Of a DNA stretch of 32,308 nucleotides, positions 2,118 to 9,117 are shown piece by piece. A program made the translations under genes and the position numbers. Numbering within the stretch: the first letter of the stretch is position 1; each line of letters opens with the position of its first letter. The notes beneath the pieces are model-generated. The model searched no databases. It was not told where the DNA came from and saw only the letters and a list, made by a program, of their open reading frames with translations. The stretch lies in the sequence record NC_004087.1. One strand, written 5' to 3'.

Positions 2118-2426
2118 ATGGAATTTGAAGATTTAGATGTAGTTCTATATGTATTTTTTGAAAATCCAGAAATGAAAAGTTTTGAATTTGAATTTAAACA
2201 ATTATTTGAAACTACTGAGAGCGGTTTAAGATATCTGATAGGAGTTCCAGATTCAAGAAATAAAATCAAAAATAATAATGAAATTATTGAAGAATTTATA
2301 TATTATCAAAATGATGATATTGTTACTAAGTTGATATTTTATTATACTAAAGGCACGAATAGAATTTATATAAGAAAAATTTACGGCTGGAAAGAGAAAA
2401 GATTAGAGTCTGAAGATGAAGAATAA
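2118..2426 (+). CDS. acrID1: AcrID1-family anti-CRISPR protein
   Basis: N-terminus MEFEDLDVVLYVFFENPEMK resembles AcrID1 (MNYKELEKMLDVIFENSEIK, from memory). Acidic protein with a C-terminal beta-hairpin ending IYGW. TATA+TGTCATA promoter at 2073-2089. Confidence 0.75.
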   Translation: MEFEDLDVVLYVFFENPEMKSFEFEFKQLFETTESGLRYLIGVPDSRNKIKNNNEIIEEFIYYQNDDIVTKLIFYYTKGTNRIYIRKIYGWKEKRLESEDEE

Positions 2427-2476
2427 TTAATCAAAAATTTATAAAAATGTCATATATTGAAAAATTAGGTGACAAT

Positions 2477-2677
2477 ATGGTAAAAAGATTAAAAATTCTG
2501 ATAGATAATGAGTTCAGTAATCTTATAATTGAATTTAAGAGAAATGTTAAAAAAAGTTTTGAAGGTGAAGCTTTTGTTACTATTGGAATTGATGAAAACG
2601 ATAAGATATCTTATATCTCAATAGAACCGTTAGATAAAGATCTAAAAGAAGGAATAAAGAGAATTAAAGTTCTTTAA
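2477..2677 (+). CDS. 66-aa DUF2283-like protein (start moved from 2447)
   Basis: The ATG at 2447 is inside the promoter motif ATAAAAATGTCATA; a GGTGA SD at 2468-2472 precedes the ATG at 2477. The pattern KILID-x4-LIIEF...VTIGIDENDKISYISI resembles DUF2283. Confidence 0.65.
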   Translation: MVKRLKILIDNEFSNLIIEFKRNVKKSFEGEAFVTIGIDENDKISYISIEPLDKDLKEGIKRIKVL

Positions 2678-2726: not shown

Positions 2727-3044
2727 ATGAATTATATGATTTTCAATTCATTAATTGTTCAAAAATATATTTTAAATAATGCAAAAGCAGTTGCTACAAT
2801 TAGGAAAAAAGGTTATTATAAATTATATCAAAAAATTATTTTGAAAGTTGGAGATAAAAGATTTTATGGAAAAGTTATCGCAAAAGCTCCAGTTACTGAA
2901 TATTGTCTTTCAAAATATGTGAAATTTAGCGGATTTGAAAATGTTGAGAATTGGTTAAATGAAGCTAAAAGACTTCATAATGATAAAATAGATTTTGAGA
3001 GATATGAAATTATTGTAATTTGGATAAATGATTCATTCTTCTAA
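2727..3044 (+). CDS. ASCH/PUA-like domain protein
   Basis: ILNNAKAVATIRK matches the ASCH IxxGxKxxTxR motif; SGFENVENW matches the xGFxSxEEW motif. Confidence 0.65.
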   Translation: MNYMIFNSLIVQKYILNNAKAVATIRKKGYYKLYQKIILKVGDKRFYGKVIAKAPVTEYCLSKYVKFSGFENVENWLNEAKRLHNDKIDFERYEIIVIWINDSFF

Positions 3045-8191: not shown

Positions 8192-8808
8192 TCATGAATT
8201 ATGAAGATCATATAAAAGAAAGCTTTAAAGTTAAATATCCTGCAGATACGATTTTTCCATCTGAAGTTGGTATTTGTTATAGAAAAAGTTATCTTGCTAG
8301 AAATATTGAATTTGAAAGAGGAATAAATGAAATTTATTTAGATTTAGGAGAACAATATCATGAGAGAATTGAACAATATTTTAAAGAAAAATTGAATTGT
8401 CAAACTGAAGTTGAAATTAAAGATGAAATTGAAGGAATAAAAATTAGCGGTAGAATTGATATAGTTTGTAATAATGACTTATTGGAAATTAAAACAATTA
8501 GTTATAATTATTTTCAAGTAAAAGAATATCACTTATATCAAGTTGCATTATATTATCATATTCTTAAAAAGCAAAATTATCAAATTAATAATGTATATAT
8601 TGTATATTTAAATAGGAATACTAGAGAAGTTAAGCAATTTAAAATTGATGAAAAAGTTTTAGAAAATTATTATCAAAAAGTTATTGAATGGATAAAGAAA
8701 TTTAAAGAATATCTAAAAGAAACAGATTATAAAAAAGTTCCAGGAGTTAACAATTATATTTGTAAATCTTGCGAATTCAAACAAAAATGCATTATATCAC
8801 TTTTTTAA
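8185..8808 (+). CDS. cas4: Cas4-like Fe-S exonuclease
   Basis: PD-(D/E)xK motif GRIDIV...LLEIKT, QVALY, one N-terminal Cys plus C-terminal CxxCx5C. Confidence 0.92.
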
Positions 8809-8871
8809 TGAAAAAATAGAAGAGTAAAAAGATATAAAAATGTCATAATATAAAATGTAAAAATAGAGAAC

Positions 8872-9117
8872 ATGAGTTCCCAAGAAGAAATCATAAAAAC
8901 TTTAAATAAAAAAGATATAAAAGATATAATAACGAAAAATATTTCTTTTTTAGTTGAACCTCAAATCTTGTTTTATGCAAAAAAGAGAAATAGAATTGTA
9001 GGATATCTAGAGGTTAACGGTAGACATTATCGTTTTGAGCTAATTTTTTCAAAAGATAATAGCGTAAGTATAACAATTGGAGAACTGGTAGTATTTGGGA
9101 GCAGTGATTTAAAATGA
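8872..9117 (+). CDS. Hypothetical 81-aa protein
   Basis: GATATAAAAATGTCATA promoter at 8831-8847; intact ORF. Confidence 0.8.
   Translation: MSSQEEIIKTLNKKDIKDIITKNISFLVEPQILFYAKKRNRIVGYLEVNGRHYRFELIFSKDNSVSITIGELVVFGSSDLK

Follow-up and report, generated by a model that had tools for sequence, protein, structure and literature searches.

SIRV1 gp04, an apparent host-derived core of a Sulfolobales cassette protein, as a candidate viral antitoxin

Why would a rudivirus carry, beside an anti-CRISPR-family gene, a small gene whose product resembles one half of a toxin-antitoxin pair? A sequence-only reading of this locus had proposed that the product is a stand-alone DUF2283-like antitoxin, which would neutralize a host abortive-infection module. 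The window analyzed here was the complete SIRV1 genome of 32,308 nt (AJ414696/NC_004087, 99.9%–100% identity). The feature under study was SIRV1gp04, which is annotated as a hypothetical protein and whose SIRV2 counterpart is gp11/ORF62a.

Start codon, promoter and neighbors of gp04

The annotated gp04 ORF spans positions 2447–2677 on the plus strand and encodes 76 amino acids. Its first 30 nt (2447–2476, plus strand; MSYIEKLGDN) are probably untranslated: the ATG at 2447 falls within a recurrent motif, ATAAAAATGTCAT, at 2441–2453, this 5′ extension has no equivalent in SIRV2, and residues 1–12 of the gp04 AlphaFold model had pLDDT values below 50. An internal ATG at 2477 matches the position at which SIRV2 gp11 is annotated to begin, the sole difference in SIRV1 being a 12-nt insertion just downstream. 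Four nucleotides 5′ of this ATG lies a Shine-Dalgarno-like GGTGA (2468–2472, plus strand, read from the sequence), which we take to be the Sulfolobus ribosome-binding motif. Because ATG 2447 sits in a promoter motif, while ATG 2477 has both GGTGA and a SIRV2-aligned start, the latter is the likelier start codon and the true protein is probably 66 amino acids long. The resulting CDS (2477–2677, plus strand, 66 codons plus stop) encodes MVKRLKILIDNEFSNLIIEF...VTIGIDENDKISYISIEPL..., a DUF2283-like core with a predicted strand-strand-strand-strand-helix order, and is the protein on which the sequence-only reading was based; its choice of start was thus preferable to the annotated one.

The same reading had assigned the gene a GTC promoter of its own. 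A candidate private promoter is located at 2438–2453 on the plus strand, consisting of the TATA-like box TTTATAAA (2438–2445) followed by ATGTCAT, with GTC at 2449–2451. The motif TWWAAAWTGTCAT matched the genome 16 times, compared to 5.5 matches expected, no shuffled sequence got to 16, and copies lie 5′ of gp03, gp04 and gp05. A GTC trinucleotide was reportedly described in rudiviral promoters by Kessler et al. in 2004. We infer promoter function for the TATA plus GTC element before gp04, and the assignment agrees with what had been proposed. Written as ATAAAAWTGTCAT (TATA-like box plus GTC), the motif has 16 sites in the window, ~3x commoner than in shuffles, examples being 2076, 2441, 2705, 5595-, 6406, 8834, 16123, 26989- and 30222-. 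The motif holds an ATG that is able to misguide ORF callers, as at 2447.

Upstream of gp04 lies gp03 (2118–2426, plus strand), a DUF1374/AcrID1-family anti-CRISPR homolog by its Pfam match (PF07118, E = 2.9e-37) and its RefSeq name, so the acrID1-like neighbor that had been noted is confirmed; the promoter motif also precedes gp03, at 2076–2088. Downstream, gp05 (105 amino acids, 2727–3044) has a motif copy at 2705–2717, 10 nt 5′ of its annotated ATG. The PHROG profile matches gp05 from residue 4, and ATG 2736 may be its true start. In the same region, SIRV1gp01 (1306–1473) is labeled "terminase small subunit" by RefSeq and PHROGs. By Pfam helix-turn-helix matches it is a 55-amino-acid helix-turn-helix protein, and the supplement of PMC11065993 lists it as Aca8, an anti-CRISPR-associated regulator. 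For a rudivirus, a terminase label seems wrong. Ambiguous bases occur at about 1050–1070, in the terminal repeat region, and a minus-strand ORF at 1027–1146 shows XXX in its translation.

The host cassette and the segment kept by the virus

Cellular and metagenomic homologs of gp04 were found in a search of 5.8 billion proteins and fell into 22 clusters of 85–99 amino acids (some truncated calls were shorter). These were 60%–80% identical to gp04 over their C-terminal ~60 residues and carried a further ~28 residues at the N terminus, with the motif G-x-Q-I-S-T-N-F in Sulfolobales. The viral copies lack this N-terminal ~28-residue segment. The host gene, here called g1 (88 amino acids; 85–89 among the cellular homologs), was present in S. 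islandicus REY15A, HVE10/4 and Y.G.57.14, in Acidianus hospitalis, A. ambivalens and Metallosphaera yellowstonensis, with further copies in Caldivirga and Ca. Acidianus copahuensis.

In almost every Sulfolobales genome, g1 overlaps by 8 nt a conserved gene for a 129-amino-acid protein, g2; in Caldivirga, the two are separated by a gap of 5 nt. No match to g2 was found in Pfam or PADLOC. Its structure was modeled very confidently as all-beta (pLDDT 94.8, pTM 0.85), and Foldseek searches of the model against PDB gave no fold neighbor, all TM-scores being below 0.4. A third ORF, g3, follows g2 and is described below. The cassette has the layout of a type II toxin-antitoxin system, namely small, adjacent, co-oriented genes with g1/g2 and g2/g3 overlaps in variable or defense regions. 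In S. islandicus, the neighboring genes encode PIN, VapBC, PaREP1, OLD-like/AAA_15-21, CARF (Cas_APE2256) and TnpB proteins; transposase genes are also among the neighbors of host cassettes. When S. islandicus (L019/L024) was compared with M. yellowstonensis (L014), the g1 core was 92.7% identical in DNA and the g2 protein was 95% identical. Because this inter-genus identity is far above expectation, it suggests that the cassette moves horizontally among hosts.

Among 50,697 virus records searched, homologs of gp04 were found only in SIRV1 variants and SIRV2, whose gp11 is 77% identical to gp04; SIRV3 does not have the gene. At the DNA level, gp04 and the chromosomal gene of S. islandicus, the host species of the virus, share a block of 173 nt (2496–2668, plus strand) with sharp edges on both sides: compared to REY15A/HVE10/4 DNA, the block was 92.5% identical in SIRV2 and 86.7% identical in SIRV1, while the flanks were 32%–44% identical. 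The protein encoded by S. islandicus g1 is about 95% identical to the viral core, S. islandicus is the nearest cellular relative of the viral gene among those sampled, and the SIRV2 copy is closer to S. islandicus than to SIRV1. By these alignments, gp04 is a host-derived, core-only copy of g1, the first protein of a three-gene Sulfolobales cassette.

Neither partner gene accompanies it. No homolog of g2 or g3 was detected anywhere in SIRV1 by tblastn, which also led us to reject a decayed remnant of either gene, and neither was found in IMG/VR. The virus has a homolog of the host antitoxin-like gene and none of the toxin candidates, in agreement with the earlier statement that no toxin gene lies nearby. 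The adjoining gp05 was considered as a toxin partner of gp04 and rejected, since it has no similarity to g2; no function was found for it.

The pattern of substitution bears on whether the gene has any role in the virus. Between SIRV2 and the host, 8 synonymous and 5 non-synonymous codon differences were counted; between SIRV1 and the host, there were 11 of each, and SIRV1 gp04 has lost two glycines that are nearly invariant in the family (FGN to FSN and NGR to NDK). The equal counts and the lost glycines could reflect relaxed constraint in SIRV1. They would suit the view that gp04 is a recently captured host fragment, carried as a passenger, without an adaptive role, in a terminal region that is variable and prone to recombination, as would the restriction of the gene to SIRV1, its variants and SIRV2 and the finding that it is dispensable: SIRV2 gp11 (ORF62a) is an accessory gene, and gp10–14 were lost spontaneously in culture, on passage in CRISPR-null hosts (PMC6315595). 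We nevertheless consider a passenger quite unlikely, given that the ORF is intact in both SIRV1 and SIRV2 and has gained a new start codon as well as a Shine-Dalgarno-like element and a viral promoter motif of its own, that change between SIRV2 and the host is mostly synonymous, that the edges of the captured block match a complete DUF2283-sized domain, and that short homologs lacking a partner are found elsewhere too.

That gp10–14 were lost in hosts without CRISPR would also be expected if gp04 acted against CRISPR, or against a different defense, with no relation to the host cassette; the known anti-CRISPR genes of rudiviruses cluster in the terminal accessory region, and gp04 lies there next to a member of the AcrID1 family. 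This explanation is very improbable in our view, as no known anti-CRISPR family matches gp04 and as it would leave unexplained why gp04 is nearly identical to one gene of a particular cassette of the host.

Relation to the DUF2283 and DUF4258 families

The sequence-only reading had recognized a DUF2283 pattern in gp04. In direct searches, gp04 had no match in Pfam (hmmscan, E ≤ 10), NCBIfam, PADLOC or the sequences of the PDB, and its PHROGs match was only to a family of unknown function. Among 26 members of the gp04 family scanned, P0041 alone matched PF10049 (DUF2283, YuzE-like), at 20.9 bits (E = 4e-4), just under the Pfam gathering threshold of 23 bits. The gp04 family is small: its profile, searched against 1.84 billion representatives, retrieved 20 proteins at E ≤ 0.001. 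The large proteins among these matches (P0045 and P0047–P0049) were rejected as relatives, being repeat proteins of the cadherin, Calx-beta and Big_9 types. Each matches profile positions 25–61 several times, a generic beta-hairpin likeness which warns that short matches of this profile are prone to over-reading.

For comparison between profiles, DUF2283 sequences were fetched with a consensus-like probe, which was itself checked against PF10049 and scored 91 bits. Using hhalign, the gp04 family aligned with 25 DUF2283 proteins with a probability of 56.6% (P = 1e-4) and with 120 DUF2283 proteins with a probability of 78.8% (P = 1.6e-5, score 32.6, 51 columns). Column shuffles gave a mean score of 11.5 (SD 2.8, maximum 23) and reversed alignments gave 12–14, placing the observed score about 7 SD over the shuffles, with the whole domain aligned. 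The register was that proposed from the sequence, with LKILIDNEFSNLIIEF opposite kikYDkEaDaLyI and VTIGIDENDKISYISIE opposite vilDyDedGrivGIEI. The best AlphaFold model of gp04 had a mean pLDDT of 76.7, the other four models being near 60, and contained strands at residues 16–20, 25–29, 42–48 and 54–61 and a helix at 64–75. Foldseek searches of this model against PDB and BFVD returned no neighbor, TM-scores again being below 0.4 throughout. A profile search of the PDB found no DUF2283 structure to match, so these empty results are uninformative. The DUF2283 pattern stands at the level of profiles; gp04 itself matches nothing in Pfam. In our judgment, the gp04 protein is probably a DUF2283-type domain that has diverged, short of formal Pfam membership. 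Because canonical DUF2283 proteins are mostly 64 amino acids long, the viral protein of 62–66 amino acids constitutes a complete minimal domain.

DUF4258 is a predicted RelE-type nuclease family and the usual partner of DUF2283, and the pair is a predicted type II toxin-antitoxin module. This pairing, which the sequence-only reading had given as established, was borne out in the plasmid DUF2283 loci that were fetched: in 4 of 5, the DUF2283 gene is immediately preceded by an annotated DUF4258 gene that overlaps it by 4 nt, and in the fifth, the upstream gene is labeled hypothetical and its product is 40% identical to a DUF4258 protein. DUF4258 toxins have been described as uncharacterized (PMC11980606).

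A candidate for the corresponding host gene was present in the cassette and had been missed by gene callers. In Ca. A. copahuensis, an ORF of 97 amino acids overlaps the end of g2 and has a weak Pfam match to DUF4258 (E = 0.004). By tblastn, the equivalent ORF, g3 (~96 amino acids), was located directly after g2 in S. islandicus HVE10/4 (L024:8645–8932), M. yellowstonensis, S. ohwakuensis and Caldivirga, overlapping the g2 stop codon in most genomes; coordinates at other loci are L014:4567–4851, L006:6648–6938, L015:4595–4903 and L016:2702–2995. In REY15A, g3 is damaged by a 1-nt indel (L019, ~8650–8931), and some metagenome copies are also damaged (L009–13, L040). The frame is open across about 96 codons even in taxa as far apart as Caldivirga, substitutions pile up at third codon positions (17 versus 4 and 7; 49 versus 27 and 21), and a metagenome scan seeded with g3 found nine loci, six of which have the order g1-g2-g3. 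Together, these features indicate that g3 is a genuine coding gene. In most genomes it begins with ATT or ATA, a codon that overlaps the stop of g2 (ATTAA), and in Ca. A. copahuensis it begins with TTG, which suggests that initiation is coupled and weak. A programmed frameshift joining g2 and g3 was considered unlikely, because the frame of g3 differs between species: it is +1 in S. islandicus, and in Ca. A. copahuensis, where the start is TTG, it is +2.

The assignment of g3 to a DUF4258-like family is weak. Pfam DUF4258 matched one of six g3 members. In hhalign comparisons, g3 aligned with three plasmid DUF4258 proteins over 77 columns (P = 2.4e-4); with five DUF4258 proteins, the alignment was shorter and weaker (29 columns, P = 1e-3), and an alignment of ten g3 sequences matched DUF4258 over 76–85 columns (P = 2.1e-4, probability 46%). 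The probability thus ranged from 22% to 46%, depending on the alignment. The motifs H-A-x-x-R-L...R and IIT were in register, and the score of 27 compares to a mean of 10.5 for shuffles (SD 2.2, maximum 18.4). Cross-comparisons by hhalign of g1 with DUF4258 and of g3 with DUF2283 were null. Because DUF2283 and DUF4258 are habitual operon partners, the likeness of g1 to one and of g3 to the other strengthens both assignments, and this partner status is the strongest argument for the two, each of which is weak alone.

Canonical DUF4258-DUF2283 pairs combine a small beta-rich protein of ~64 amino acids with a RelE-superfamily-like protein of about 85–95 amino acids, encoded by overlapping genes in one operon, and g1 and g3 resemble the two halves at the level of profiles. 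The canonical pair differs in comprising two genes with the toxin first, whereas the host cassette has g1, then the extra 129-amino-acid all-beta g2, and then g3. Host g1 also has an extra N-terminal segment compared to canonical DUF2283, and both family matches are under the Pfam thresholds. In place of a simple DUF4258-DUF2283 pair, the host module has three genes, the third of which is weakly DUF4258-like.

A candidate mechanism and its rivals

In the mechanism that we propose, the cassette would be a toxin-antitoxin-type defense module in which g1 keeps a toxic component silent. SIRV1 would make the 62–66-amino-acid core from its own promoter, beside an anti-CRISPR-family gene. If host g1 were lost or released during infection, the viral core would supply neutralization and abortive infection would be prevented. 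That gp04 acts in this general way, neutralizing the toxin of a host toxin-antitoxin-type cassette, we judge to be somewhat probable. The earlier inference, in which a stand-alone viral protein homologous to an antitoxin-like protein of the host would act on a host module of this type, is supported, and all of the genomic evidence gathered fits it: the identity of g1 to the viral gene (about 95% in protein, 92.5% in DNA), the defense-related neighbors of the host cassette, the presence of a single cassette gene in the virus, the profile-level likeness to DUF2283 and the weakly DUF4258-like g3.

The same idea is already published as a hypothesis. Bhoobalan-Chitty et al. (Nat Commun 2024, PMC11065993) independently proposed a viral antitoxin homolog, predicted to block the toxin in infected cells, in arCOG08091, which is encoded in SIRV1 and SIRV2 and lies beside arCOG07288 in Sulfolobales. 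In that study, the two proteins were reported to resemble no known protein, arCOG07288 was taken as the toxin of a two-gene module, and an AlphaFold complex placed the N-terminal strand of g1 against the C-terminal strand of arCOG07288 (g2). Matched by description, these are almost certainly the same genes as gp04/g1 and g2: the description of arCOG08091 (SIRV1 and SIRV2, 3 viral proteins, arCOG07288 as operon partner in Sulfolobales and further archaea) fits gp04 alone among the genes that we have seen. The present analysis differs from that model in that g1 is DUF2283-like, a third, DUF4258-like ORF follows arCOG07288, and the viral copies lack the interface strand. Neither the third gene nor the links to DUF2283 and DUF4258 seem to have been reported before.

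The missing strand counts against the mechanism, since the only published prediction of a partner contact for g1 concerns a region that the viral copy lacks. Two options follow: the core could bind g2 as well, or its target could be g3, which we favor. Because the viral copy has the size of a canonical DUF2283 protein and lacks the ~28 residues placed against the C-terminal strand of g2, the N-terminal strand of g1 may tether g2, with the core binding the DUF4258-like product of g3, and the viral core could then neutralize the toxin without being coupled to g2. We hold this specific version only tentatively, as one possibility. An elaboration of it, which is doubtful, is a tripartite system, hitherto unrecognized, in which the N-terminal strand of g1 holds g2, perhaps a sensor or adaptor, and the core neutralizes g3 produced in small amounts from its ATT or ATA codon; a viral core uncoupled from g2 could not be switched off by the infection signal of the host.

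Loss of the strand predicted to touch arCOG07288 is also what might be expected of an antagonist or regulator, which would bind host g1 (core to core), g2 or the control region of the cassette and would silence or reprogram the module without binding a toxin directly. Its model is QseM, an antiactivator with weak likeness to the DUF2283 domain of FseA. The only DUF2283-similar proteins studied by experiment are the transcriptional activator FseA, which carries DUF2283, and QseM, its truncated paralog, and neither is an antitoxin (PMC4755241). In Mesorhizobium ICEMlSymR7A, QseM is proposed to have arisen by N-terminal loss and to act by binding its paralog, which parallels the core-only viral copy (PMC4755241). 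That system governs transcription for excision of a mobile element and not a toxin module, however, and its tie to gp04 is through the DUF2283 profile only. That DUF4258 toxins are uncharacterized in the literature (PMC11980606) leaves further room for an antagonist, but titrating a host antitoxin would normally free the toxin and hurt the virus, DUF2283 proteins matching gp04 in size occur in canonical toxin-antitoxin-like pairs with DUF4258, and no DNA-binding signature was found in gp04 with Pfam. An antagonist is therefore unlikely, and we retain neutralization of a cassette toxin as the preferred reading.

Virus-encoded orphan antitoxins include SMV1 gp44, T4 Dmd and the pseudo-ToxI of phage PhiTE (all as cited in PMC11065993). 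As with gp04, the virus in each case has the antitoxin-like half only, without the toxin, and the role, proposed in the case of gp04, is to prevent abortive infection. These examples rest on experiment, whereas the role of gp04 is proposed here from sequence. In particular, SMV1 gp44, a viral Phd homolog of a different family, was shown by experiment to neutralize the S. islandicus Doc toxin (PMC11065993). The SIRV copies differ from these antitoxins in being truncated and in their DNA identity to the host gene, which exceeds 90% in SIRV2 (92.5%; SIRV1, 86.7%) and argues for very recent capture. In the accessible portion of the PMC11065993 list of genes with an early anti-defense regulatory motif, gp04 does not appear.

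If the mechanism is correct, gp04 would be the second case of a viral antitoxin homolog directed against a host toxin, after SMV1 gp44, and it would be unusually clear-cut, in that the virus has only lately captured a domain-sized piece of a gene of its host. SIRV2 and S. islandicus REY15A and HVE10/4 are all genetically tractable. The links to DUF2283 and DUF4258 would give a first functional handle on a widespread, uncharacterized family pair, and the unannotated g3 alters the choice of toxin candidate. Should the truncation matter, the system would show how a virus separates neutralization from sensing in a defense module.

Genes resembling g1 or its core also occur alone outside these viruses. 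In A. infernus (L003:8260–8451), the cassette is decayed, with g2 shortened to 63 amino acids and g3 absent, and adjoins a CcdA-like/PIN pair; in Acidianus sp. HS-5 (L005), g1 is intact and both g2 and g3 are absent. The g1 genes of these two strains look like orphan antitoxin-like genes that persist in cells too. Short homologs were also found on metagenome contigs (L025:520–750, 76 amino acids; L026:706–906, 66 amino acids), one of them being P0041. The short homologs P0041 and P0044 have neither the N-terminal extension nor an adjoining g2, and P0041 is the protein with the near-threshold DUF2283 match.
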